Both the position numbers and the translations under genes were made by a program. A model generated the notes under the pieces. It was not told where the DNA came from and made no database searches. It was given only the letters and a program-made list of their open reading frames with translations. Shown here piece after piece: positions 6,700-64,000 of a DNA stretch of 64,000 nt; within the stretch, counting starts at the first letter, position 1; the number at the start of each line of letters is the position of its first letter. Source of the stretch: Eukaryota sp. TZLM1-RC (Eukaryota > Protista > Metamonada: BaSk clade). The stretch lies in contig JAUPSS010000004.1 in NCBI GenBank assembly GCA_040285825.1, positions 5,051,784 to 5,115,783 on the forward strand, given 5' to 3'.

Positions 6700-7295
6700 C
6701 GAAAAAAAACGTTCAGGGATATTTTCAGTATCTGATTGCAATGACAACAGAGTGGTCGATGTTACTCAACCTACTGAAATTGGGTTAATGTGAATCCTCA
6801 AAGAGATACACTGAAAGATAAAGTGTATTGGACCTCCATCTATATCAAGGAAGAAGAAAAGCTATACGCTGTAATGGCTTCGACTATTGTATCCGTCGCC
6901 AAAAGAGATTCAGCCATTTTGTCCAGAAAATCAAAGACATGGCTGAAAATCGTGAAGTGATTATTTGGTTTGGTAAAGGAGGTGATGGACCCTGCCGTCA
7001 AAGAGTGAAAACACCAAGAAAGCGTTTTCTGAAGTATCTCATGGCTCGATTTCCAACCGTGAAGGATGGAGATGAATACTACACATCTGCCAAGATGAAC
7101 TGTTGCAAAGTTTTCCATGGCGACCTTTACTTCATAGAGAATGGAGAAAGGAAAAAGTTTAAAGCCTATTTTGCATGTCCAAAATGTGGGATGGTTTGGT
7201 CAAGAGATATATCTGCATCGAGAAACCAGTGGGAGATTGCAGTAAGCGAGTATTTTTTGAACCCAAGACCCCTAGCACTTAGAAGACCTCAATAA
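6700..7295 (+). pseudogene. Fanzor (TnpB-like) C-terminal half, 5'-truncated; lineage B
   Basis: VIIWFGKGG, RuvC-II DEYYTS, zinc-finger cysteines (CC...CPKC), RuvC-III WSRDISASRN and the terminal RPLALRR typical of Fanzor1. Confidence 0.85.
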
Positions 7296-36570: not shown

Positions 36571-37824
36571 TTGAATTATCTCTAAAGAATCTTCAGAACT
36601 TCTCGATACTAATCTTATTGAAGAACTTATTATTAAAGCAATGATTGAAGAATAGTGTATTTATAGCATTTCACGAAAATGATAAATATGAATTACTAGG
36701 AACTCCATTTCTAGTAAATGATTGTAAATGAATGTAAGCCTATCATATCGTTGTGGAAGTTTCAACAGATCGATGTGGAAATTCAAATAACATTTTTCTT
36801 GATGAATATGAATTAATTATGAAACTTATTATTGACTACGATACTGAAGTCTTTAGCAGTTTCGGAATTTATCTCTATGGACACAATTACTTTGAGCTAA
36901 GTGACTTTGACACTTACTAAAGTTCTAAAGAAATCGCAGAATATATTTGTGATAGATTAACTACTATTTGTGAAGGCGAAGTAACTTACGCAAGAACTAC
37001 TAATTCTTTTTTGTTTATTTTTGAAAAATATTATCTTTAACGTCCTAACTGTGAACGTGATGATGAATTAATTAAAAATGCAATCCTAAAAAAGACTAAT
37101 GTCTAGAATACTAATAAGGATAGAACTATGAAAGAAAACTTTAAATATCCCAGTCCTAATTTTCCTTACGATTTCGCCTGCGAAGAAATCATCATCCATT
37201 TGCAACTATTACTCCAAAAACTACTTTGAGTGATGAAACAAAACATAGATTAGCCTTACTTATTCAAACGATGGACAGAATGTAGAGTAATACTAATTCA
37301 AGGCCATTCTTATAATAAAATAATTGTGCGAAAGATGGAACTCAGAAATTTAAGAAAGCTATTCGTGATTACTCTACTAAATTCGTTCCACAATAATAGA
37401 AATAAGATTATGTATGTGAAAGGGTAGTCTCTAACTTCTCAAAATACAAGAATAAATGTATAAATGGTTGAAAAATGGAATCAACTTTTGACATTGTAAT
37501 AGACAATTACTCAACAGACAAAATTCCTCTTATACTGAGTGGTTGGTGTGTATCAAGTTTAACAATTCTTTGAAGTTAAACAAATAGTATTATATTAATT
37601 GCGCAACAAACTCGAGCTAATCGGTCCATTGATCCTACAGCAGCTGAAAACGACAAAGCTAGACCCTACTACAGGCTACATCCCAGTATTCCCGATGATT
37701 CAACAATTAAAGCACTCAACCAACTTTCACCAAGATGGAGGAAGTTATTATCAGGGAAAATGACCTTTATCTTCTAGATACACTGGTATTTGCAAAGAAA
37801 TTTATCAAAATCCAATATGATCAT

Positions 37825-37970
37825 AAATTGGGCAATCTTGCGTATTAAATGAATAGTGAAAAGAAAATGAAACTTCATCAGGAATTTATCATTACGTTAC
37901 CTGTTTAGCCACTGCTTCACTTAGACAAAATTTGATTCCATATGGGCTTCATGATTGTGTATTATTGCTC
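37825..37970 (+). pseudogene. Relic of the exonuclease-Fanzor element (ExoIII region)
   Basis: GGCAATCT...GAAAAGAAAATGAAACTTCATCAGGAATTT...TATGGGCTTCATGATTGTGT matches the reverse complement of ~45270-45410. Confidence 0.7.
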
Positions 37971-42388: not shown

Positions 42389-42498
42389 TGATAATGGTGA
42401 TGGTGAATACCAACTATAACAAGAAGAAATCTTGGTCAACTAGTTTCTCATCTGTGGGAAATTCCCATAAATACACGATCAATTTTCGTGTGGAATAA

Positions 42499-45400
42499 TT
42501 ACAAAAACCATCTACTACACAGATACTGAGGCCTTTCATTACCCCTCATTCTAGCTTCAGCAATAGCAAACATATTCAGACAAGCCAGCTTATTTCTATT
42601 GAAAAGCTTTGTTGAGCCTTTGTTACTGTGTTTGCAACACTCACCGTTACAAGCTAATAAACCATGACATGTAGGAACAGGAGTCTCTTCTCTTCTACAG
42701 AATCTGGGATTTGTTACTCTCAAAAATTTAGCGACCTTTTCAAAACAAACAGGACATTTTGCTGAAGTTTTTTTATTAATTTCAATTTTATTCAAAACTT
42801 ATAAATCAACATCTAAAAAATCCATCTCTCCCAAAACAAAAACACTAGATGCAACTCTCTCATAGTGAGATCCAAGAGAAAGCAAAGCATCAGAAACCAT
42901 CTTCAACATCCCCTTAAAAATAAAAAACACAATTCTATTTTGCCAAAATAATCTGTTGAAATTTCAACTAGTTTTTCTCTTTACAATCATTTCAAAATCT
43001 TCCAAAAAACGTAAAGCAGTTGGTGCAAGTGAACCAAAAAGGGAAAATACAAATGGATACAAATTGTATTTTGCATGCTGTAGACTGGCCAATTTGGACA
43101 AAGGTTCATTGTATTTTTTGAATTTAAAATTTTCAGCATTTGAAAGAGGATTATGAATTTCAGAATTAACAAGCCTTTCATTTGAGGCATTACAAGGATC
43201 AACAGACATTACATCCAATAAAATGAAGCTTCCATCTAATCCAGGTAATATTACATCACCTCTATTATTCTTATAAAAATCATCTTCAGCATCAAACAGA
43301 TTTGACAACAGAGGTTCCAAAAAGGATTCAATTCTATGAGACTTACACATTCAATATAACTGGTCTCATACAGCATCATGAACCTTGCTTCTAAAAGTAA
43401 TAAAGTGTTTACAATATAACAAATGAGTAATTGTAATTTTTCGAGAACATTGACAAATTAAATTATGAGGTAAATCATCAGGCCAGATAAAGGAACGAAA
43501 TCTCATATTCAGAGTCCAACCAGAATCAGTTAAAAGAGTACCATAAACTTGAGGAATTGTTGTTACTAAGGCAGAAGAAGTACTGTCACACATATCTTGT
43601 AAAAGATTTGCAAAAGCGGGATTCTTTTTCTTGGCCAAGCCAAGTCTAACATCAAAATCCAAGCTTTCAAAAATCTTTGACAATTTTTGTTGAAGCTTTT
43701 TACAGCAAAACTGTAAATTAAAAAGAAATCGGTTTGGAATTTCTTGAATTGATTGAGGAAAACATTTGGTACAAATTAGTGGCGGCAATTTTTCAATTTC
43801 ACATGATAACTCATACAAATATGGACTGCAATTGGGAACTAACAGATGAGAATCATCAGGAAATCTACGAGAAAATTCATAAATAAAATTTTTGTCACCA
43901 CCCAAGAATGCTGATTGACACAAAATTGAAGATTTAGTAAATCCAATACCACCCAAATTTGCTGATGAAAATAAGTGACTTTTCAACATTCCTGATTCTA
44001 CATTCAATAAATCAGCAAAAAATTCTGTTCTCAATGAATTAAAAGAACGACAAAAATCTAATGCTATGGAAGGAGCACAATATCTCAAAAAGTGGGTTAT
44101 TCTCCCAGTGTAGCAAATTTTAAGCATGAAAAATTTAATATGTTTTTCTATATCTAAAGAAGAAATTGAATCAAGTTCAATTTTCATTTTTTCCAAAATA
44201 ACTTCCAATTCATTCTGAATTTGAGGCACGTTCCTAACCAACAACCAAGGAACTTAAAAGCATCACTACTATAATTAGTAAAGGGGACAATAGAATCATT
44301 TATCACGAGATCTTGAGCAGAAGAGCCAATGAGAAGGCATTTGCTCGCATTAAGATGAAGCCCAATATTTTCATATGAATCAGCAATTTCTTTTGCTGAA
44401 GTGAAAGCTTCATTGATCATCAATACTTCAAAATCATTTCTTTTCCGAAATTAAATCCATCCAATGCCTCGAGCAGGCCTATGATGTTTCAAATTCTTAA
44501 AACCATTTGTCATTTCGTTAGACTCGATCATTTGGTTCCTGTCATAACCTACCTCAGTATATTTGGTCGCCAATCGTTTCTGTTTTTCATTCATCCTACT
44601 TTTCAAAGACCAGGACATCGGAGTCATTCTCTACCATTTGAATTTCTTGTCTTGATTCATCACCTGACCATTTCTTTGTTGTTCAGTTTCATGTTCAGGC
44701 ACCATGGCTAATTCTGGATCCGTTTTTTACTCCCAAAATACAATAAATCACGTTTTCCAGGATCACAAACAACAATTCGTTTGTCTTGAAAAGTATCAAC
44801 ATCAACATCATCAATAAATAAATCAGAAACACTGGCCTTGTTGTCTGGCTTACATTTCTCACCTTGTAAATCCCGACGAACAAATTCTACTGCAATATTA
44901 AATCCATCTGTGTGGATAATGTTGTTGATTTTATAGCTCTTCTATTTGAACATTGATTGATTTAAATCGAGAATATTAGACCAAAAGTCAAATTGTTCAG
45001 GTGATTTGAATTCCATAATTTGGGCTCGTGTATTGACCTTTTTTAATCTCGTGGTGGTATGAAATTACGTACAAAACAAGACTGTAAATACAGCTTTAAG
45101 CAACATGTGGCGTGTATTTGTAATTGTTGAAATTTTACAGCAGTTTCTCTCAATTTAAGTATCGCATTTGAATGTTTAACCATTGAGTTGACGGTTGCTG
45201 GAATGGTTTTATAAGATGATAAAATAAATATGTCTTTCTGAAACATCACGAAAAGTTTCAGACAAAGGACACAATCATGAAGCCCATAATGAATTGAATT
45301 TTGTATCAGAGGAGAAGTAGCTAAACAATCAATTGGCAAAATATGGAAAAATTCCTGATGAAGTTTGATTTTCTTTTCATTTTTCATTCTATGTGCCAGA

Positions 45401-45951
45401 TTGCCTAATACATGTCCAAATCAAGCTGCAGTAAATTGTGATTAAGACAACAATGGGGTTGATGATGATGAACCTGTGAAGCAAGATTTTTTCGTCAGGG
45501 AACATTTCTGCCTGAACATACATATCAATGTCTGCTAATCTGATTTGAGGACTCATTCTCAATATAAGTGAATATTTACTCTCCAAACAGAAATTATGGT
45601 GGTCAAACTTACAAATAACAATCGAAATAAAAAACACTTTTTGATTTGAAATCCACTCACCCATTTGTTCATCAGTTTGCTTTTTCAAAAGATTTGCACC
45701 TCGTTTCTCTTTTTGTTGATAGTCTCGTCAGGAAGGAGAAATTGGCCATCATGATTTTGGTAAAGATGACCATCCTGATAGGTTTCAAGATCAAAGCACA
45801 TAACAGTGGGAAAATTTTGTGTTGTTGTCCTTAATTCCAACTCTATCAAAGGATCAAGCTTGAAGCCACCACGACTTGGCTCAATTTTTTTGACCATACT
45901 CGTTTTCAATGGTCTTTTTGTCAAAATCTTCCTGTTCTCGATATTCAACAT
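42499..45951 (-). pseudogene. DEDDy exonuclease-Fanzor1 fusion pseudogene (copy A2), split by a non-LTR insertion
   Basis: ExoI FDLET (~45790), ExoII-like HNLLQLD, ExoIII YGLHD continuing in one ORF (45043-45387) into the Fanzor N-terminal IHATCCLKLYL. Then IHTDG, RuvC-I DPGKRDLLYF (~44763) and RuvC-II INEAFTSAK (~44410). After the insertion come CPVC...HGLLAC...C...NRNKLACLN...RPQYL. Confidence 0.8.
42769..44390 (-). mobile_element. 5'-truncated RLE non-LTR retrotransposon (family B) with 12-bp target-site duplication
   Basis: RT C-terminal GLHLNASKC/FKFLG, thumb, CQC...HLLYC knuckle, RGD..D endonuclease. Flanked by identical TTTTGCTGAAGT at 42757-42768 and 44391-44402. Confidence 0.92.
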
Positions 45952-46350: not shown

Positions 46351-47090
46351 CTAGTTTCTTTGTGGTCTCTGGAACGCTTCTGGTCTTGTTACATAGTAGT
46401 GCTCACTAATTGCAATGTCTAGCTGATTTAGTGATGTTGAAATGTCTCTAGACCAAACTTGATTACTTTCCGGACAACCGAAATAGGCGTTGTGAACTTT
46501 AACTTCACCATTAACTTCTCGATAGATCTTTTGGTGTAGCATCTTGCAGCAGTTCACCTTTGCAGATGTCCTTTGTTCATCTCCGATCTTCACATTAGCA
46601 AATGAACATTGTGACAACTTGAGAAACGCCTTACGTGGTGTTTTCACTTTTTGACGTGATGTACCACCACCTCCATTGCCAAACCACACTTTTACTTCTC
46701 GACCGTTTGCAAATTTTTTCACTTTGTTGATAATTGAGCTGAATCTTCTCTGTTTTCTTATAAAGAAGTCAAATGTGTTTCTTCTCAATGCTTTTCGAGC
46801 GCTCAGGTATAATTGCTGCTTCAGCAATGATCGTCTTACGTTATTGCCTTCTTACTCCTTATAGTCACCGATAGTTGATATTTCAAGCAGATAATGGTTC
46901 AATTTCTGCATATCATAAACATCTATTGATGAGTGGGTCAGTGAAGCAGAGTGATTGATTTTTCGTTGCTTTGGTGCCAAGAAGATATTGGGTACGGTTG
47001 GCCCTGAACGTGTTCCAATGCCGGAACCACATAGATTTGAGTGGTTGGTTATTGAGTTTTTCAACTTCTCATGAAATCTAAGTTTAGTTT
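46351..47090 (-). pseudogene. Fanzor C-terminal half, lineage B
   Basis: Homolog of 6828-7295: VKVWFGNGG, DEQRTS, WSRDISTSLN, RPEAFQR. ORF 46852-47064 is in the same frame across one stop. Confidence 0.85.
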
Positions 47091-51908: not shown

Positions 51909-52508
51909 TTAAAACTTGAGTTTACCTCCCGGAATGGCATCACATTCGTTGGGGTGATGTGGAGTGAACACCAGATGTTCCCGTTTGACATCACATTGAT
52001 CGATAAGAATCTCTGCAATTTGTTTAATGGCTTCTACATCATCACAACTACGTAACCAAATGTCTACCCTTGGAGAACCCCTCTTAACAAGGATGTAAAT
52101 GCCAGTTATAAGGTCTCCTAATTCTCCAAATTGTTCACCAACCAAGAACATTAGAATGTTATCAACGAATTGGTTGATTTCGGATTCATTCCCTCGGAAC
52201 GAAGGGAGACTGTATTTGTAACGGCCTCCATTAGCATTATTTGGGTCCTCCCATGTTGGTTTCACGTCAGCTTCAAAAACTTGAAGGGAAGATCCGGATT
52301 TGTAATCTGATGTTTTTGGAAGTGCCTTGAGGATAGAGACAAACTTCTCGGCTGTGGAGAAAGTGATGAGATTCCTCATTGTGTTTTCAAAAGAACTCTT
52401 GTCCTTGGAAGCTTCAGCTGCTGTGAAGTAGAGAGTCCATGAGCGATGTAAGGGATGTTCTTCCACTTCCTGGGGAGAGGGTGAGATGTGCTGTTCAACT
52501 GAGGTCAT
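51909..52508 (-). CDS. eIF4E: Cap-binding protein eIF4E (divergent)
   Basis: HPL..SWTLY, KPTWEDPNNANGGR, VGEQF, IWLR, FTPH. Confidence 0.92.
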   Translation of the reverse strand: MTSVEQHISPSPQEVEEHPLHRSWTLYFTAAEASKDKSSFENTMRNLITFSTAEKFVSILKALPKTSDYKSGSSLQVFEADVKPTWEDPNNANGGRYKYSLPSFRGNESEINQFVDNILMFLVGEQFGELGDLITGIYILVKRGSPRVDIWLRSCDDVEAIKQIAEILIDQCDVKREHLVFTPHHPNECDAIPGGKLKF

Positions 52509-52549
52509 TGAAACAGATATTGTCTATAACAATGAAATAAGTGTCCTTT

Positions 52550-55500
52550 TTACACCGATGTAGAGGGACTGGGTTCTTGAGAAGCAGAAAATTGTCTCCT
52601 TGATGCCTTTTTCTTTGAAAATTTGTCAACCTTGACTCTCTGCAGGTATTGCGGTCTATCTCCACCATTTACATTTGCTTCCATCATTGTTAACATATTC
52701 AGCGAAGCATTTCGATCTCTATTCCACAAACTTTCGCATGATTTACACATAGTAAGCCCGTGACGAATAGACATCTCATGCCTCTTCCATGGCCTAGGAT
52801 TTCTGCACCATCTGAATGTTTCAACTGTTTTTTCCGTCTTCTTACAGTTGAAACAACAGCAACTGGTTCGACACTCATCAATCAAAAAGACCTTATAATC
52901 AGCCTTTTTAAATAGAATTCTCAACCCTTTTCCTTTGGTAGATTCTTTGAATTTCATGTGTTTTCGTTGTTCCCAGTCTCCAATTCCAATAACTACTTGG
53001 CTGGGATCAATCAGTTACTGATTTGAATCTCTGAATCATCTTCCCTCCATCTTGTGCGATTAATCTCAGCCCACCATCTTTGTTTCCCAAATATTTTTTG
53101 ATGATAGACTTCACCAACAATACTATTCACATAATTCTTTTGTTTAATATACTCCATAAATCTATCAAACCTGCATCTTTTGGAATTGAATTGGGATAAA
53201 GTTGCTTCCCGTTCTGCTACAAATTTAGTCGTGTGATCATTATTTCGCAAATTGAATGAGTAATCAATTTCATGGGGAATATTGATTTCTTGAAGTACTT
53301 CACCTCTTAATAAACTAATTGTTCTTTCAGTCATTTGATTAATTATACTACTGTTTAAAGACATCCTTTGTTGTTGCTCTTCAGAAGGTTCATAATTGGA
53401 TAGATCAATAACTCTACCAGTAGAGTTATTGTGATAAGAGTGTCATTCCGTAAGCTGTCTCTTATTCTTTTGAATTTGTAACTTTTCGACTCAAATCTTC
53501 GTTGATTTTGAGTGTATTTGAAATGAAAATATTTATCTCTCTCAGGTTTGTTTGAATGAGTCATTCCAATAGCTAAATTGGCAGAAAAATAGAGTAGATC
53601 AGATTTCTCTGGATCAGCAGCAGCAAGGGTCATATCTTGGAATTCAGAAGGATTGATACTGTGGTCACCGATATATTTTTCTTTATCTTTCAATTCTTTT
53701 GCATTTACTTTGTACTTTTTCAAGTCCATTCTAGATTGAATGAAACTTATGTTAGTCTTTACACTATTCTAGAGTGTAGTTAGACTTATCTATTTGTTCT
53801 TGTATATTAGCTTAATGTTTATTGTTCTGTCATGGAGACTTCACTGGTGATGGTATTGAAATTCAATATAGCTCATTTCCCATCGTAATAAATTGCTCTC
53901 TCTCTCTGTTCATATGTCTGACTCTAGCCCACAGGCATCACTTACTGCTATTCCATCAGTCTCGATACTAGACATGATGTACTTGGAATTTTCTGCATAA
54001 AGTTTAGTGTTTTTAATCATATCCATTTTCAAAAAGGTATTCCATAAAACCAGATCATCAGCTTGATGATTGCATTGGTAAGACGACCTTGGACCAAGAA
54101 TGTCTTTGAATTGGACAAAAAACAAGTCCAATAAACATGTCTGGTCAATTCTGATATACGAGGGAATACAAGAATTCTTCAAAGGCAGAGCATGAAAGAG
54201 TTTGCTTTCCGCATCTTCCGCAATGTTACAAATTTGATTTTAACGAAAAATCAAATTTTAAATATTTTTCCCTTTTAGAATTACTGGGAAGTAAAAGAGG
54301 AATCCGATCATTAATGAAAGCAAAATAATTGATATAATTGAAATAATTGATGAGACTTTGTTTCTCATTGCAGAAGTTTCGCCATCAATATCTCTACATC
54401 CTTCTAAAAGGAAAGATTCAACTTTGTTGATGATTGATGAGAAGTTTCTCCTATCTTGCTTTTCAGGACATTGTTGTTTCTCTTAACATCATAAAAGCAT
54501 CAACAACAAACCGATCCAAGTAATCAAAGTAATGCTCCTGGATGTTAGTTTTGAAATTCACAATTAGTTTGTCAATTGTGTAATACAAAATATTATTTAT
54601 TCCTTTTTCTTGATACAACTTTTCGAACAAGTATTTCTCTAAAGTGTTGGTGATAGAATTCCAACAATGGGGCACAATGAGGATTTTGCAAAGCTGTTTT
54701 TGTCTTTGCGTTAAAGGAACTTTCCTCCTCATTTTGGGACGTGACCATAAAAAAAGCGTCACGAAATAATTGGGTTTCAATTTTTGGTTAAACATCATTT
54801 GGGTTTAAGTCAAAAAGATGCAAATAATAACCACAAATGAACTCTAAACCAACAGTAGAAATTTCCTGACACCTAATTACTGCCTCATCGATCACGTCAA
54901 GCATTTTCGGATCTCTGATGACATTTTTTAGACTGTCCTTATAACCATCATAAGGTTTATGTTTGACAGTTTATATGAATTGGTCATTGTTAAAGAAATT
55001 AAATATTTTCATGGTTAAATCTCTATCCCTTAAACAATAAACTGCAACTGCAGTTCTTCTTTGGGATAAGGATAAATCTGAGAAGCTATCATTTTCTTGA
55101 ACCTTCCAAAATTTTGCAAAATATAGAGGATCAAGGTCAATTTTACTCTCCCCTAATAAAATTGTAGAAACTGTGTTTAGTTTGCGTGGTTGATAATAAT
55201 GTGTGTAAATACTACAAGTATCAACAACAAATCGACCAGCAATTAAGGGGTTCAAGTGTTTGTGATTCAATTCTATTAAATTTGAGTTAAAATATTGAAC
55301 CCATTCATCAGCACCGATTTCACCCTTAAAAAAGTCCTCATCTTCAGAACCTTTCATAATATGTGGGATGTCAAATTTGAGAATTTTAAAACCACATATT
55401 ATATGAGGATTATAAGTTTTTAATAATTTTTTAAATGAACTTAGCAATTTTTTTTCAGAAAAATGATGATATAAAGTGATATTTTTATCATCAACTTTGC

Positions 55501-56840
55501 AATAATGTTCATTTCTGCTTGTTGATTTTTCTACAAGATCACAAAAACAAAGATTTAATTCAACCTGTTCTCGAGTAAAAATATGTGAAACAGAATTTGC
55601 AACAGTTTTTCCTGTAGATTGACAGTAAGAGATGCAATGTTCCCTTGTAGAAATAACAATTATTTCATTCTCATCACTGAGCATTTAACCCAACACCAAA
55701 ATTTCAATATCAAAATGTAATATTCTGAGAGTAAATTGTGTTTTGACATTTGATGGTGTTACTAAGGAGTATTTATATTGAGTCAGCTGATTCTCATTGA
55801 AAAGTGTTTTTACACGTTTCAAAGGTGTGCTCAATACATCAGCTCGCCTTTTTCTGATGTTTTTATGTACAGAGGAGCATTTCTTTGTCTCAAATGATTT
55901 TCGTTCATTGTCATCACAGCTATAAAAACAACTTTTGTCTTGATTGACAAAATGTTTAACATGAGCTGAATCAATTGAATTGAGCTGATTTGACAACAAC
56001 AAATTGATCATTTTTTTTGCAAACAGTATGGGGAATTTTCCACAATCATACAAATTGGATTGAAAAAATTCAGATATATTCTGACTGATATTGATTCCAA
56101 ATTTTTCATAAATTATTGAATTAATATTTTGATGTTGTCCTTCATTATGACGAAGACTATCAAAAAGAAAAGCTTTTACTATTCTGGATTTGATCCAGAA
56201 TGCAACAAATACCCCATGTTGTCCAATAGTAAATTGTTCGTCAACAGACCGAATCAAATTTGATTGATGAAATGCATCATTATAGGGTAGAAGAATCAAT
56301 GTGTTTTCTTCGTCGCCAGAATTGATCAATTGTGAGCAAAAATCCTCTTGAACAAATCCCCTAAAAAACAATAGGGCTGATGCGATGGGCCAAACAAGTA
56401 TTTTGTGATGTGACAGTGGAGTTGATGACTGATTGATAAAGTTGTTGATCGAACCAGTGATTTGTTCATTATCTAACCACCTGTCTTTAACATCATCATT
56501 TTGTTGCCCTCCACTTGTTAAATTAATTTTTTTAAAATATACATTGTTATTATAAAAAGGAATTCAATTTATATAATTTTTGATAAAACAATTATAGAAT
56601 ATTTTATCAGATAGGTCATAAATCTCTCCAAAATAAACACAAAATGAATTGCTCCCTTCTATAAAGAGGCTGTGGGTGGAAAAACTGATGTGTGAAACAC
56701 ATACAGCTTCCAGTTTCGTGCCCCAGACACGACCAGCAAATTCATAGATAATGTGTTGTCTTGAAGGATTTATACAATGTTTATTAAACACTCTCTGAAA
56801 CTCTGTGATGATAACAAAATTTTCAAAAATAGTATTGTAC
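52550..56840 (-). pseudogene. Ulp1/SENP8-like protease - DEDDy exonuclease - Fanzor1 fusion pseudogene (copy A1)
   Basis: One reading frame from ~56840 to ~54600, broken only by single stops. Protease: WLDNEQI, LPYND, GQH, FDSL, QSNLYDCG. Exonuclease: FDIE, GFKILKFDI, YCLRD. Then Fanzor KDSLKNVIRD..IDEAVIRC, NIQEHYFDYLDRF, PSYIRID, ETDG, DPEKSDLLYF, YTQNQRRFES, IGDWEQRKHMKFKE.TKGKG, DECRTS, zinc finger, WNRDRNASLN, RPQYLQR. Confidence 0.85.
53750..53940. mobile_element. Probable solo LTR inserted in the Fanzor gene
   Basis: 191 bp with TG...CA termini, flanked by CTTA (53746-49 and 53941-44). Removal restores ETDGIAVSFIQSRMDLKK in frame. Confidence 0.7.
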
Positions 56841-57040
56841 TAAATGGATGTTTTAACTGAAAACCAACAAATAAAAACCCAATAAAAAAAAGAAAAGTTG
56901 CTTATATTACATTACATTACATTATATTATATTATATTATATTATATTATATTATATTATATTATATTATATTATATTATATTATATTATATTATATTAT
57001 ATTATATTATATTATATTATATTATATTATATTATATTAT

Positions 57041-57595
57041 ATGAAAGAAACCCTGCTGAAAGAAACACTTTCTCTGAATAATTTTGGTTCTGATGATAGA
57101 GGTGATGTATACTGTGATTGGATTGATAATTCTGAAGCTATTGTTGACTTTGTCTCATGTAATGTTGCAAACGATACTTTGGTTCACAGAAGAAAACTTA
57201 ATCCTGTGGCTGCTCTGGATTTTAAAGCAAAAGAAAAACATAGAAAATATGATAAAGAAATTGAAGATGCAAATGTCGATAGAAATACACAGCTGGTTTT
57301 TATTGCTTTCCCATTTTCGATAAATGGAAGATTATCAGTTGAAGCAGAAACTTTTTTGGATGACTTCCAAAAAATGGTGAAAGAAAAAACAATGAAAAGA
57401 TTTGATATTTTTTTATGGCGTTCACGGATTCAATTTGCCATTATTAATAGATTACCGCGGTTTTTCAATCGAATTAGAGAAGCTTTAGCTAGACAGCAAG
57501 CAAATCAAGATTTTGTAGAGGAAATCTTGGTTTAATGATAGTCGTCCCATTAGTTATGATTTAATTTAATCAAGTGTGCAAATTCAATAAATAAA
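57041..57595 (+). mobile_element. Family A RLE 3' fragment within the (ATTAT)n array, copy 1
   Basis: Intact endonuclease-domain ORF 57041-57535 plus 3' UTR. Confidence 0.92.
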
Positions 57596-57745
57596 ATTAT
57601 ATTATATTATATTACATTATATTATATTATATTATATTATATTATATTATATTATATTATATTATATTATATTATATTATATTATATTATATTATATTAT
57701 ATTACATTATATTATATTATATTATATTATATTATATTATATTAT

Positions 57746-58300
57746 ATGAAAGAAACCCTGCTGAAAGAAACACTTTCACTGAATAATTTTGGTTCTGATG
57801 ATAGAGGTGATGTATACTGTGATTGGATTGATAATTCTGAAGCTATTGTTGACTTTGTCTCATGTAATGTTGCAAACGATACTTTGGTTCGCAGAAGAAA
57901 ACTTAATCCTGTGGCTGCTCTGGATTTTAAAGCAAAAGAAAAACATAGAAAATATGATAAAGAAATTGAAGATGCAAATGTCGATAGAAATACACAGCTG
58001 GTATTTATTGCTTTCCCATTTTCGATAAATGGAAGATTATCAGTTGAAGCAGAAACTTTTTTGGATGACTTCCAAAAAATGGTGAAAGAAAAAACAATGA
58101 AAAGATTTGATATTTTTTTATGGCGTTCACGGATTCAATTTGCCATTATTAATAGATTACCGCGGTTTTTCAATCGAATTAGAGAAGCTTTAGCTAGACA
58201 GCAAGCAAATCAAGATTTTGTAGAGGAAATCTTGGTTTAATGATAGTCGTCCCATTAGTTATGATTTAATTTGATCAAGTGTGCAAATTCAATAAATAAA
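57746..58300 (+). mobile_element. Family A RLE 3' fragment within the (ATTAT)n array, copy 2
   Basis: Same 5' truncation point as copy 1; about four substitutions seen. Confidence 0.92.
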
Positions 58301-59994
58301 ATTATATTATATTATATTACATTATATTATATTATATTATATTATATTATATTATATTATATTATATTATATTATATTACATTATATTATATTATATTAT
58401 ATTATATTATATTATATTATATTATATTATATTATATTATATTATATTATATTATATTATATTATATTATATTATATTATATTATATTATATTATATTAT
58501 ATTATATTATATTATATTATATTATATTATATTATATTATATTATATTATATTATATTATATTATATTATATTATATTATATTATATTATATTATATTAT
58601 ATTATATTATATTATATTATATTATATTATATTATATTATATTATATTATATTATATTATATTATATTATATTATATTATATTATATTATATTATATTAT
58701 ATTATATTATATTATATTATATTATATTATATTATATTATATTATATTATATTATATTATATTATATTATATTATATTATATTATATTATATTATATTAT
58801 ATTATATTATATTATATTATATTATATTATATTATATTATATTATATTATATTATATTATATTATATTATATTATATTAATAAAGTAATACACGTGTCAT
58901 GTAGTACTTTTCTATTGATTACGATATTCGGCAAATATTCGAGTTTTGTTTTGTTGTTCAACTCAAAAGGCAACAATTTCATTTTCGATTTTGATTCTAG
59001 TAATGTCTTCAGAAGTTGCAAAGAAAAGCACTTTAGGAATGTGATTCAAAAACATTTCGCTAATCAATCAATATGCAGCATTCAACATAAAATTGAATTG
59101 TGTAAATCTTCTAATTTCAATAATTCTTATTAGTTGGCACAGAATTTAAAGAACTTCAAATTAATTAATCTAAAATCCTCTTTACCAATTTTCCTAAAGA
59201 CACATTTCGTTTTCTGAGGTGTATGTTAGCAAACATTGATGAAAGTACCTAACAATTTGAAAAATTGGCGATTAGCTGAAATTGAATTCAGTATGATTTA
59301 AAAATTGAACAATTCACCAACATTGTTATTTTTGGAATTTGTTATTCAACAAAATTGAATTACTTTATGTGTAGAAAATTACTCGTTTATTAATGTCGGC
59401 AGTACCAATTATACCTCTTGAAATTGCCACTCATTTAACCAACTTCATGTGAAATTTTTTGCTTTCCTACTGCAATTGAGACCTGATTTATTTTAAGCTT
59501 ATTCGTTTCCATCTTCACAATTTGTTTGTGTAGGGTTTACAAAAACTTCAATTGTTTTTCAAACATCATTTGTTGGTAGTAAAACAAATTCTGTTCTTTG
59601 TTTTCTGAATTGTTACTCCATGCGTTATCCATCATTTAGGGATAAATGATGTTCCTTAAGTTCATGATGTGGTACGTGACAAGCTCTATTGCGTGTGTGA
59701 GACGCACAAAATTGAATTGTTTCAAGAACCTTTGCTTCTTTCCTTTTAAATTTAACTGATGAATTTGACAAACATTCTTTTGGTGATATTCGTGGACATG
59801 TGTTGGTTCCAGTCCTTGGTGGATCGATGGTCACTATTGATGTCAGATCCACAGATGTATCAAACAGCTCAAATGAACCACAAGCACCATCTTATAATTC
59901 ATCTTTACGTATAGTTAAAAAATCCAAAACTAACAAGTATGTTGAAATAATTGCTAATTTTTTGTAAACTGTATTTTTATTGAAATAAAATTCT

Positions 59995-61505: not shown

Positions 61506-64000
61506 TCACTTCCTAATTCTAGTACTATGTCTAGGCCTCTTGCAAGGCGCAGAGTTATTGGAGGTACTCTTACGTTGACTAGAGGTACGTTTTCCAATTT
61601 TCTTGTTATTCCTACTGAACAACTTGTAAGCTTCTGAATGTTTAACTGAATGGAGAGGCTCTTCTGTTGTCTCACCGCCAAACCATTGAACAGTACAGAA
61701 ACTACCTGAGTCAGAATTATATTCTGAGAGGATTTTCTCTATAACATGTTTCTCAGCATCGCCTGCTGCGACTGCTTTTAGAAATTCGATATCCTGAGGA
61801 TTATCTGCGTTATAGATTTTGCAATCTTTCTTGGCAGCTTTTAATTCACTGCCAGTGATAAGATTCTTTAATAATAAAGTAGAGTTGGAAGGACGGTCTA
61901 TTACTAAAAAGGGTCCGTTCCAAGATCCATGTAATTTATTATTCTGTTTGGTTTTACGTAGGACATAGTCACCAATATTAAATACTATAGAGCGCGAATT
62001 AGTATTGTCTACTGAAATCGGAGTATTTGATAATTGATGACGCTCTGCTTCTTCCCTTTTTTCTTGCAGACGAGTATTTTTCATTTTAATATCGTCTAAT
62101 AAAGGTATATTGGAATCAAATTTTGATAAGTTTCCTAATATGTTTGCAGGGTCCGATCTTGGACTAATCGAAGATCCGAACATTAGTTCGTAAGGTGTAA
62201 AACCTGTCTTTCTGCTTTTAGTGGAATTTATTAATAGTTGGGATATGGGTACATAAGTAGACCAATTTCCATAATCATTAAAATCTATTAATAATTTCCT
62301 CAAGCATTGTAGAACGTCTCTATGTTTTCGCTCTACGAGTCCATTACTTTCAGAGTAGTGGGGTATTGAGTTACTCATCTCAATAGCTAATCTATTACAC
62401 ACTATCTTAAAAGTCTCATTGGCGAACTCAGGACCATTATCACTATGAATTAACATAGGTATGCCAAAAATTGCGCAAACGTTCCAAATCAAAGCGTCTG
62501 CGGTCTCTAAGGCATTGAGTTCCTTCAGAGGGACTAAAATTGAATATCCAGTAAAAGAATCTACAAATACTAATAAGTATTTATTAGCATCACTATCAGT
62601 ATTCAGAGGTCCAATTGTGTCAACATTTAGTCTGGCAAAAGGACGATCTGCCCAAAGGGAACCTGTGAAAGGTGTATTTGTTCTTTTAACTGGTGCCGTT
62701 TTTTGACAAGTTGGGCATCTTTTGATGTGGTTTATGAGGTCCTTTCTCATATTAGGCCAGAAAAAGTCGCTTTTGGACAGTTTATGTAGACTGTCGTTTT
62801 TGCTGGGGTGGCCTGATTGAACCAATCCATGAATTAATAATAGTGCCTGTTTTCTGAGGCTTTTTGGAATTAAAATTTTATTTTTATTGTTTTTCCAAAT
62901 TTGAGTATATTCATCTAGAATTGCATTCTCAAATAGAGGGTCATTATTATTTTTGGCTATTTGTTGTTCGGATCTTATTTTAGAGAACCAAGAAGAAAAA
63001 ATAGGTAAGTCCTGGTGTCTACTTAGGGATGAAATTGATGGGATGTCTTCGAAGTCCGAATCAGAATCATCGTCTATAGGAGGTATCTCGTAATTCGAAA
63101 GTAAAGTATCTGGTATATTTATACTACATATAGAAGGAGTTTCCTCATTTTGATCTAAATCAATATTCCTCGATAGCATATCTGCCCAGTGGTTATCTTC
63201 ACCTGGTTCATGGACTATATCAAAGTCGAATTCAGATAGTATCGGCAGCCATCTCTTTACAATTCTATTTTTCTCTGGGGATGTGGCCAGGAATGCGATA
63301 TTTTTGTGATCGGTGAAAATTGTTAGATGTCTAGTCAAAAGGTAGCTTTCTAAACAACTTTCAGTTAAAATCAGAAGAATTGCATATAATTCTTTCTGTA
63401 AAGTGGACCATTTTCTTTGTGTTTCTGTAAGTAATCTACTATAGAACGACAAAGGTTTCACTTTTCTTTTATTCAGCGGGGTTCCTGCAGGGGAGTATGG
63501 TTCAATTTCTTGCCAAATAACGCCTCCAACTGCTACATCTGATGCGTCGGTACTTATTAGTACGCGCTTGCCCGGAGCTGGTAATTCAAGGGGCATGTGA
63601 TTAATTATTAAATCTTTTATTTGTTTAAGATAATCGTCATGCTCGTTGGTCCATTTTATTACTCTAGGTTTTCCTTTAATTAACTCATTAATTGGAGCTA
63701 TTAACTCGGAAATACCTGGAAGCCAATCTCTTATATAATTGATGGATCCTACCAATGAGCGAACTTCTTTCACTGATTTTGGTCTAGGGATTCTCATCAA
63801 GGCTTCGATTTTTTTCTTACTAATAAATCTGGTTTTTATCCTGGAAGGTGCTTCCTAAAATATCAATAGGGTGTTTGGATGTTACGAATTTACATTTACG
63901 TAAACCTATATTTACACGTCTATTTCTGGCGCATTGGAGGACTCTTTGTAATCTCTTATAGAATTCATCGAAAGTCGTTCCAACTATTATAATATCATCA
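61506..64000 (-). mobile_element. Ty3/Gypsy pol: RT C-terminus, RNase H, integrase and chromodomain-like tail
   Basis: DDII RT motif at the window edge, TDASD...KELYA...TDH RNase H, HHCC, VDT/SDNG/LVER DDE triad, GPF motif, IEKIL...VQW...T.EP chromodomain. One frameshift in the A-run near 63835. Confidence 0.95.

Follow-up and report, generated by a model that had tools for sequence, protein, structure and literature searches.

A decayed mobile element in the genome of the soda-lake protist Skoliomonas litria (Eukaryota sp. TZLM1-RC; PMC11603281) almost certainly descends from an ancestor in which a single open reading frame (ORF) of 1,461 codons encoded, in this order, a leader, a candidate cysteine protease, a linker, a proofreading-type exonuclease and the RNA-guided nuclease Fanzor1. 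The copy that we studied lies on the minus strand of a 64,000-nucleotide stretch, here called the window (contig JAUPSS010000004.1, positions 5,051,784 to 5,115,783), and it is dead. Judging from its motifs and insertion junctions, we give a probability of about 55% to the reading that the exonuclease would trim the 3' end of the Fanzor cut during the repair that copies the element in.

A single ancestral reading frame

The initial annotation of this DNA, made from its letters alone, placed the pieces of the copy in one minus-strand frame with only single stops between them, and we find the same. Five stop-to-stop pieces (56839-56567, 56563-55688, 55684-54974, 54970-54791 and 54787-54596) are separated by TGA 56566-56564, TAA 55687-55685, TAA 54973-54971 and TAA 54790-54788. 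Over the 732 codons of 56791-54596, where 57.5 stops would be expected, this frame contains 4 (P~6e-21), and the other two minus-strand frames over the same interval contain 40 and 87. Beyond 54596, the Fanzor frame runs through frameshifts to a stop at 52550.

We compared the window copy with a paralogue set, the eleven loci of the S. litria genome that hold copies of the same element; the five fully aligned paralogues share 90-92% identity with the window copy and 91-95% with one another. Each stop in the window copy is a sense codon in all paralogues that cover it (TTA, AAA, GAA and TTA, in the order of the stops), so that TAA 55687-55685, which follows FDIE, is a lesion, as had been proposed. 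The 491-aa ORF P0006 runs from a start at MSDAPPGP through the leader and the protease to ExoI, the first exonuclease motif, and a stop-free stretch of 648 aa in paralogue L005 (9407-11350) covers the protease triad and the whole exonuclease and reaches the Fanzor N-terminus (REC region); P0002-P0005 also cross the junction between exonuclease and Fanzor. It is because the paralogues read through the stops of the window copy in this way that we consider the ancestral element to have had one ORF. The majority frame, which was computed from six copies for stop and substitution counts, has zero stops in 1,461 codons (leader ~1-202, protease ~203-392, linker, exonuclease ~460-714, Fanzor ~715-1461), in agreement with the large ancestral ORF that the annotation had proposed, and the paralogues show no stop followed by a fresh start where the exonuclease gives way to Fanzor, which would have told against it. 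The protease H/D/C/Q, the ExoI D and E, the ExoII D, the ExoIII D and the RuvC D-E-D are retained in every covering copy.

It is extremely unlikely that the domains are separate genes and that the stops mark true ends of genes, are read through or recoded, or arose as errors in sequencing. The assembly is Nanopore-based and Illumina-polished, which is a point in favor of this explanation, but every stop is a sense codon in all covering paralogues, each copy carries its own distinct lesions, TAA serves as the stop of host genes in the window, and for the ancestor this explanation is refuted by the 491-aa and 648-aa read-through ORFs. A recoded genetic code was likewise rejected, on the sense codons in the paralogues and the TAA ends of the host genes.

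We identified the following parts of the element in the window, from its surviving 5' edge:
56522..56790, minus strand: remnant of the ~200-aa leader (codons ~110-200), by blastn to paralogues L003 and L004 and by P0006; broken by TGA 56566-56564
56507..56521, minus strand: LTSGG, candidate Gly-Gly self-cleavage site at the leader/protease boundary, predicted to be cleaved
55934..56482, minus strand: putative CE-clan (Ulp1/SENP8-like) cysteine protease domain, by Atlas, Pfam and motifs
55724..55933, minus strand: linker with basic RKRR (55855-55844) resembling a nuclear localization signal; a 2A peptide and Gly-Gly are both absent
54974..55723, minus strand: predicted family-B polymerase (PolB) 3'-5' exonuclease (DEDDy), by PF03104, PDB and Foldseek; broken by TAA 55687-55685
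52550..54970, minus strand: predicted Fanzor1, ~745 codons, by SpuFz1/PpFz1 matches and the RuvC triad
53750..53940, minus strand: solo-LTR-like insertion (LTR, long terminal repeat), a later lesion of 191 bp, TG...CA, with a 4-bp TAAG duplication; absent from the paralogues

Homology to the element starts at 56790 (blastn to L003/L004), and the ancestral gene began ~110 codons upstream of this surviving 5' edge. The annotated extent to 56840 thus holds for the one-frame pieces but not for 56791-56840, which lies outside the element. The copy was annotated as dead, with 53750-53940 as a removable insert, and both points are borne out: ~110 codons are missing from its 5' end, and it carries 4 nonsense changes, 8 indels and the 191-bp insert, along with motif changes HW to HG in the protease, N to K in ExoII, and DPG to DPE. 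The same 191-bp repeat is also found in public contigs with different flanks. Public contigs that are 80-99% alike span the exonuclease-Fanzor junction and skip the insert.

The exonuclease, Fanzor1 and the protease

Domain pieces were searched singly, without joining them into a read-through protein. The protease, exonuclease and Fanzor motifs named in the initial annotation were all found, at the coordinates given below.

The assignment of the exonuclease to the PolB/Pol-delta DEDDy type is strong at the level of sequence and predicted fold. It has the ExoI DxE (55723-55703), ExoII NxxxFD (55393-55370, where the Asn is Lys in the window copy and N in paralogues) and ExoIII YxxxD (55039-55025) motifs, and PF03104 matches above its cut-off, with E=2.8e-8 in window piece 55684-54974 and 1.9e-15 in the L005 paralogue. 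Yeast Pol delta is its best PDB match by sequence (1.6e-6) and by fold (3iay). The structural model is partly confident (90 residues at a predicted local distance difference test score, pLDDT, of 70-90) and its best Foldseek match is Pol delta (E=1.2e-9), a match that is not fully independent because the alignment behind the model contained PolB exonucleases. No polymerase domain (PF00136) follows the exonuclease in any piece, so this is not a family-B polymerase gene, and the annotation of a proofreading exonuclease without a polymerase is confirmed by Pfam, PDB and Foldseek.

The Fanzor1 assignment is also strong by sequence likeness. Fanzor starts ~24 aa downstream of ExoIII, its RuvC residues are D 53615, E 52876 and D 52717, and it has a C4 zinc finger at 52858-52736. 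Piece 53014-52553 has SpuFz1 (E=2.5e-14) and PpFz1 (E=2.3e-12) as its best PDB matches, and a full Fanzor1 with RuvC D-E-D, as first read, is supported by Pfam, PDB and Foldseek. In the window copy it is broken by TAA 54973, TAA 54790 and indels near 54609, 54497, 54464, 54336, 54234, 53429, 53050 and 53010.

Of the three domains, the Ulp1/SENP-like protease is the one supported more weakly. In the window copy its residues are WLD, His 56218, Asp 56161, Gln 56062 and Cys 56044; the motifs WLD, HW, FDS and Q..YDCG come in Ulp1 order, with the triad and oxyanion Gln in CE order, and the catalytic residues are retained in 4/4 covering copies. Atlas places the window protease among Peptidase_C48 clusters (0.93, 10/10 best family matches agreeing). 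The protease claim of the initial annotation thus stands on its motifs and on Atlas but less well in Pfam, where the window copy has no PF02902 match and only paralogue L003 has one, below the cut-off (E=0.0029, 17.9 bits vs 20.7); L003 also matches the CE-clan ElaD/SseL family at E=0.0025. The leader family has no match in Pfam or Atlas. The counterpart of LTSGG at its boundary with the protease is LSGGG in L004 and L005 and LSGEG in L003, and the natural ORFs scanned have no Gly-Gly other than LSGG before their C-terminal tail. For the start of the ORF, a 2A site was considered and rejected, as the sequence there reads MSDAPPGP, not D(V/I)ExNPGP. That motif is absent between the modules of the studied lineage and present only in a second lineage, at L005:6124.

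A second, divergent lineage

This second lineage, lineage B, is represented in the window by the following copy:
42449..45950, minus strand: lineage-B exonuclease-Fanzor copy, ~21% protein identity to the studied element, interrupted by a non-LTR retroelement

Lineage B is also found at L005:6369-7943 (within L005 5797-9196). It aligns with the studied element in one collinear alignment across the junction (21% identity, E=1e-9), its exonuclease and Fanzor halves are each significant alone (0/500 shuffles), and the spacing from ExoIII to the Fanzor start is 24 residues in the studied lineage vs 20 in lineage B. Because the same junction is kept at 21% identity, we regard the exonuclease-Fanzor fusion as old and maintained. 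Upstream of the L005 copy come a hydrophobic leader, the 2A motif DVEANPGP and RKRR. A protease was not seen in this copy, and as far as the sequences go the protease appears to be a less constant module than the exonuclease-Fanzor fusion. The 3' end of lineage B has two different hairpins, in the window ~60 nt before a syntaxin-5 ATG, and a short isolated lineage-B exonuclease fragment lies at window 37681-37964 (+).

These data bear on whether the protease and exonuclease are passengers, fragments of host or giant-virus origin that came into frame by chance and do not help Fanzor. Homologues outside Skoliomonas were not found, one lineage-B copy lacks the protease, and the linker has a ratio of nonsynonymous to synonymous change (pN/pS) of 0.86, all of which would suit passengers. 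The exonuclease-Fanzor junction and all DEDDy residues nevertheless survive at 21% identity and the catalytic residues of the protease are invariant, and we consider passengers very unlikely.

As to where relatives occur, protein homologue searches returned matches only from Eukaryota sp. TZLM1-RC. A search with the element alignment A2 (proteins up to ~1,130 aa) returned S. litria pieces and ordinary PolB proteins only, and there were no relatives in metagenome contigs (query A2) or in viral contigs (queries: exonuclease and Fanzor C-terminus); as far as the searches reach, given their limits on length and words, none were found beyond Skoliomonas. The element has 13 ends, each at a different S. 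litria locus, and is thus a eukaryotic multi-copy mobile element. Its flanks are ordinary host genes and retroelements rather than those of a Polinton/Maverick or a giant virus, and no pPolB, integrase, ATPase or capsid genes were found around the protease.

Element ends at host start codons

The 3' end of the window copy coincides with the start of a host gene:
52506..52570, minus strand: conserved 3' end, putative omega-RNA scaffold with two hairpins (52570-52543, 52534-52506), conserved in copies
51909..52508, minus strand: host eIF4E gene (PF01652 E=6e-34); its ATG, at 52508-52506, doubles as the last ATG of the element hairpin

All copies have a terminal hairpin with the closing stem CATTG:CAATG. 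The hairpin (z=-2.57) varies mainly in its loop, with no compensatory pairs and a sharp conservation boundary, and the 3' end has no match in Rfam. At 11/13 element ends, the hairpin-terminal ATG opens a host ORF of 102-1,016 codons, compared with 8.7% of background CAATG sites. The host genes include eIF4E, Elongin A, CHMP7, a deaminase, an acyltransferase and a kinase, and element DNA occupies the region upstream of the host genes at whose start codons it ends. From this arrangement, the first bases of the host eIF4E would be the guide of the window copy.

Most copies are 5'-truncated, at differing points. In 6/9 copies the copy's own ATG plus 4-7 nt is repeated within 250 nt upstream of the truncation, compared with 2/72 cross comparisons (P=7e-6), and L011 is a further case with a duplication of 8 nt. 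The filler after the duplication is 6 to about 140 nt long (218 nt in L004, a doubtful case). In the window copy, where no duplication was found, the 5' junction is overwritten by a retroelement of the restriction-like endonuclease (RLE) type and a (TTATA)n array. At L005 (9230-9250) and L007 (9690-9850), elements are stacked head-to-tail at the same host ATG with a 7-8-nt gene-start duplicate between them, and because the upstream duplicate follows the 3' end of another element, filled sites appear to have been hit again. Host-orthologue clusters checked for empty sites contained S. litria sequences only.

L003 (5933-6226) and L004 (7143-7449) share ~300 bp that precede the start of the ORF and in which the reading frames have decayed, and the sequences place the true left end in this shared ~300 bp or further upstream. 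A shared CCCAGCTT after two duplications was rejected as a left end, as it mirrors the junction itself in L011. Terminal inverted repeats were not found. The 3' hairpin, truncation and duplications fit Helitron2-Fanzor1 elements of the CRe type, and there is no RepHel among the genes called in the 11 loci; no Helitron-like 5' hairpin was found, with the true left end not located.

Target-primed reverse transcription, too, is marked by precise 3' ends, 5' truncation to varying lengths, 7-10-nt duplications and filler, and the element could in principle have spread as RNA, served in trans by the abundant RLE-type non-LTR retrotransposons, with the exonuclease and protease as accessories like those of retroelement polyproteins. 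RLE elements lie in or beside most copies, lineage B has a 2A peptide, and LTR polyproteins are known to carry DnaQ-like exonucleases (PMC6338049). The element, however, lacks a reverse transcriptase and ends in neither a poly(A) nor a tandem-repeat tail, the L011 filler looks junction-templated, as in end-joining, and the same pattern is seen in CRe-1, a DNA element (PMC3627910). We therefore consider this route quite unlikely.

Proposed role of the exonuclease

Fanzor1 binds omega-RNA from the 3' end of its element, with the guide taken from the downstream flank. Fz1 enzymes cut 14-21 nt past the target-adjacent motif (TAM), and Saito et al. proposed that cutting favors the copying of an element into its empty sister (PMC10432273). 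In yeast recombination, Pol delta proofreading resects 3' ends by up to 40 nt after invasion (PMC10868807). In the reading that we prefer, trimming during copy-in repair, Fanzor would cut the element-free allele just inside the start of the host gene, leaving a TAM-side 3' tail of target sequence that is unmatched to the element-bearing donor. The tethered exonuclease would trim this tail as Pol delta proofreading does, and the element would be copied into the break. Copying would begin at the exact 3' end and often stop early, giving 5'-truncated copies that may be sealed by end-joining with 7-10-nt duplications and filler; leftovers of 7-10 nt would be the expected remnant of partial trimming. 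The protease probably clips the leader at LSGG, the job of the 2A peptide in lineage B, and/or strips ubiquitin-like tags at the break, and this is the weakest step.

The exonuclease could instead have a role apart from homing, either in trimming the 3' end of the omega-RNA or guide from a host transcript that reads through, or in destroying cut ends against religation and re-cutting, as in Cas9-TREX2, thereby mutating gene starts or competing elements. A guide inside the start of a host mRNA would need 3' processing, filled sites appear to be re-targeted, and there is a precedent in Cas9TX (PMC8904484). On the other hand, the closest relatives of the exonuclease are DNA-specific PolB proofreading domains, and Fanzors that lack a domain of this kind also produce omega-RNA (PMC10432273). 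Taking its two variants together, we judge a non-homing role unlikely, although it is the best of the alternatives to trimming during copy-in repair.

Our preferred reading is supported by the read-through ORFs, the retained catalytic residues, the junction shared with lineage B, the duplications of each copy's own flank and the similar truncations and duplications of CRe-1 (PMC3627910). The 7-10-nt duplications are shorter than the 14-21 nt at which Fz1 enzymes cut (PMC10432273), an argument for trimming that is indirect, as those distances were measured for other Fz1 enzymes. The pN/pS values relative to the majority are below 1 in each domain (protease 0.61, exonuclease 0.67, Fanzor halves 0.55 and 0.34, with the linker as given above), but they are rough counts that mix selection with decay and carry no formal test. 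Other results weigh against this reading. Because the element end restores CAATG next to its guide target, a filled site might still be cut, as the stacked ends in L005 and L007 would suit, and the Fanzor2 MmeFz2 was impaired when fused to exonucleases by engineering (PMC12923547). No intact copy was seen in the S. litria loci or in public contigs. For the protease, the window copy has no Pfam or PDB sequence match, HMMER found no relative among 1.84 billion representatives, and an AlphaFold2 model from 4 close copies was unusable (pLDDT 35).

The fullest picture would be a transposase-free RNA-guided system in which one polypeptide cuts, resects, and self-processes or strips ubiquitin-like marks, docking on host start codons so that the element replaces the upstream region and the gene's first bases serve as the guide. 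As a whole we hold this picture only tentatively, and place it on the unlikely side.

Other features of the window

A third, very divergent TnpB/Fanzor-like lineage is present at window 6828-7295 (+) and 46351-46851 (-), L003 2083-3039 and L009 5770-7619. It often adjoins the fused elements, and no exonuclease match was seen beside it. Embedded in (TTATA)n arrays at window 56902-58879 is a pair of almost identical 705-bp fragments from the 3' part of an RLE non-LTR retrotransposon. Many copies of this family are present in the window, and most Fanzor copies are interrupted by it. A Gypsy-type pol ORF (RNase H, integrase and a chromodomain-like tail) lies at 61506-63800 (-).

Relation to known systems

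The Fanzor1 OMEGA nucleases SpuFz1, PpFz1 and GtFz1 (PMC10432273, PMC11423790) share with the studied element the RuvC D-E-D, the DPG and LIDE motifs, the C4 zinc finger, a ~745-aa core and a structured 3' end overlapping the stop codon. The studied element differs in adding ~715 N-terminal residues (protease and PolB exonuclease), in having no detected terminal inverted repeats and in ending on host start codons. The CRe-1/2/3 Helitron2-type and MCi-2 Fanzor1 elements (PMC3627910) are also transposase-less, with intact 3' ends, a 3' hairpin, frequent 5' truncation and variable target duplications (7-19 bp in Chlamydomonas CRe-1 elements, which are 5'-truncated and for which no exonuclease was reported). 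In contrast to the studied element, they have no fused enzymes reported, their targets are TTTT or ATAATT rather than CA|ATG, and the RepHel or Helitron 5' end of CRe-1/2/3 was not found here.

With the proofreading exonuclease of DNA polymerase delta and other family-B polymerases the element shares the ExoI-II-III motifs, sequence and fold (3iay), but it has Fanzor1 C-terminally in place of the polymerase domain. The CE-clan protease and the Gly-Gly candidate site of the element recall the CE-clan viral polyprotein proteases, such as adenain and S273R of African swine fever virus. Kaonashi/VANC Mutator-like elements (PMC13317346) are likewise mobile elements carrying a Ulp1-type CE-clan protease. 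Unlike in either group, the protease studied here is fused to an RNA-guided nuclease, with no transposase, capsid or pPolB genes nearby. An RNA-guided nuclease has been tethered to an exonuclease by engineering, in Cas9-TREX2, exoCasMINI and MmeFz2 with TREX1, TREX2 or T5 (PMC12923547), whereas the Skoliomonas fusion is natural and old. Every one of the engineered Fanzor2 fusions lost its activity.

Each accessory domain has a precedent in other transposons. The word "exonuclease" is absent from Bao & Jurka 2013 (PMC3627910), Saito 2023 (PMC10432273), Jiang 2023 and Xu 2024 (PMC11423790), and the literature searched, mostly non-subscription sources, contained no natural Fanzor fusion with an exonuclease or Ulp1 or in a polyprotein. 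On that literature, what is new is the natural combination of protease, exonuclease and Fanzor1; the Fanzor1 nucleases themselves are known.

The Fanzors described so far are stand-alone nucleases. The copy studied is dead and the system has been seen only in Skoliomonas; with that caveat, it offers a ready-evolved design for an exonuclease-coupled compact editor. A natural, long-conserved exonuclease fusion points to end-trimming as a limiting step between the Fanzor cut and the spread of the element.

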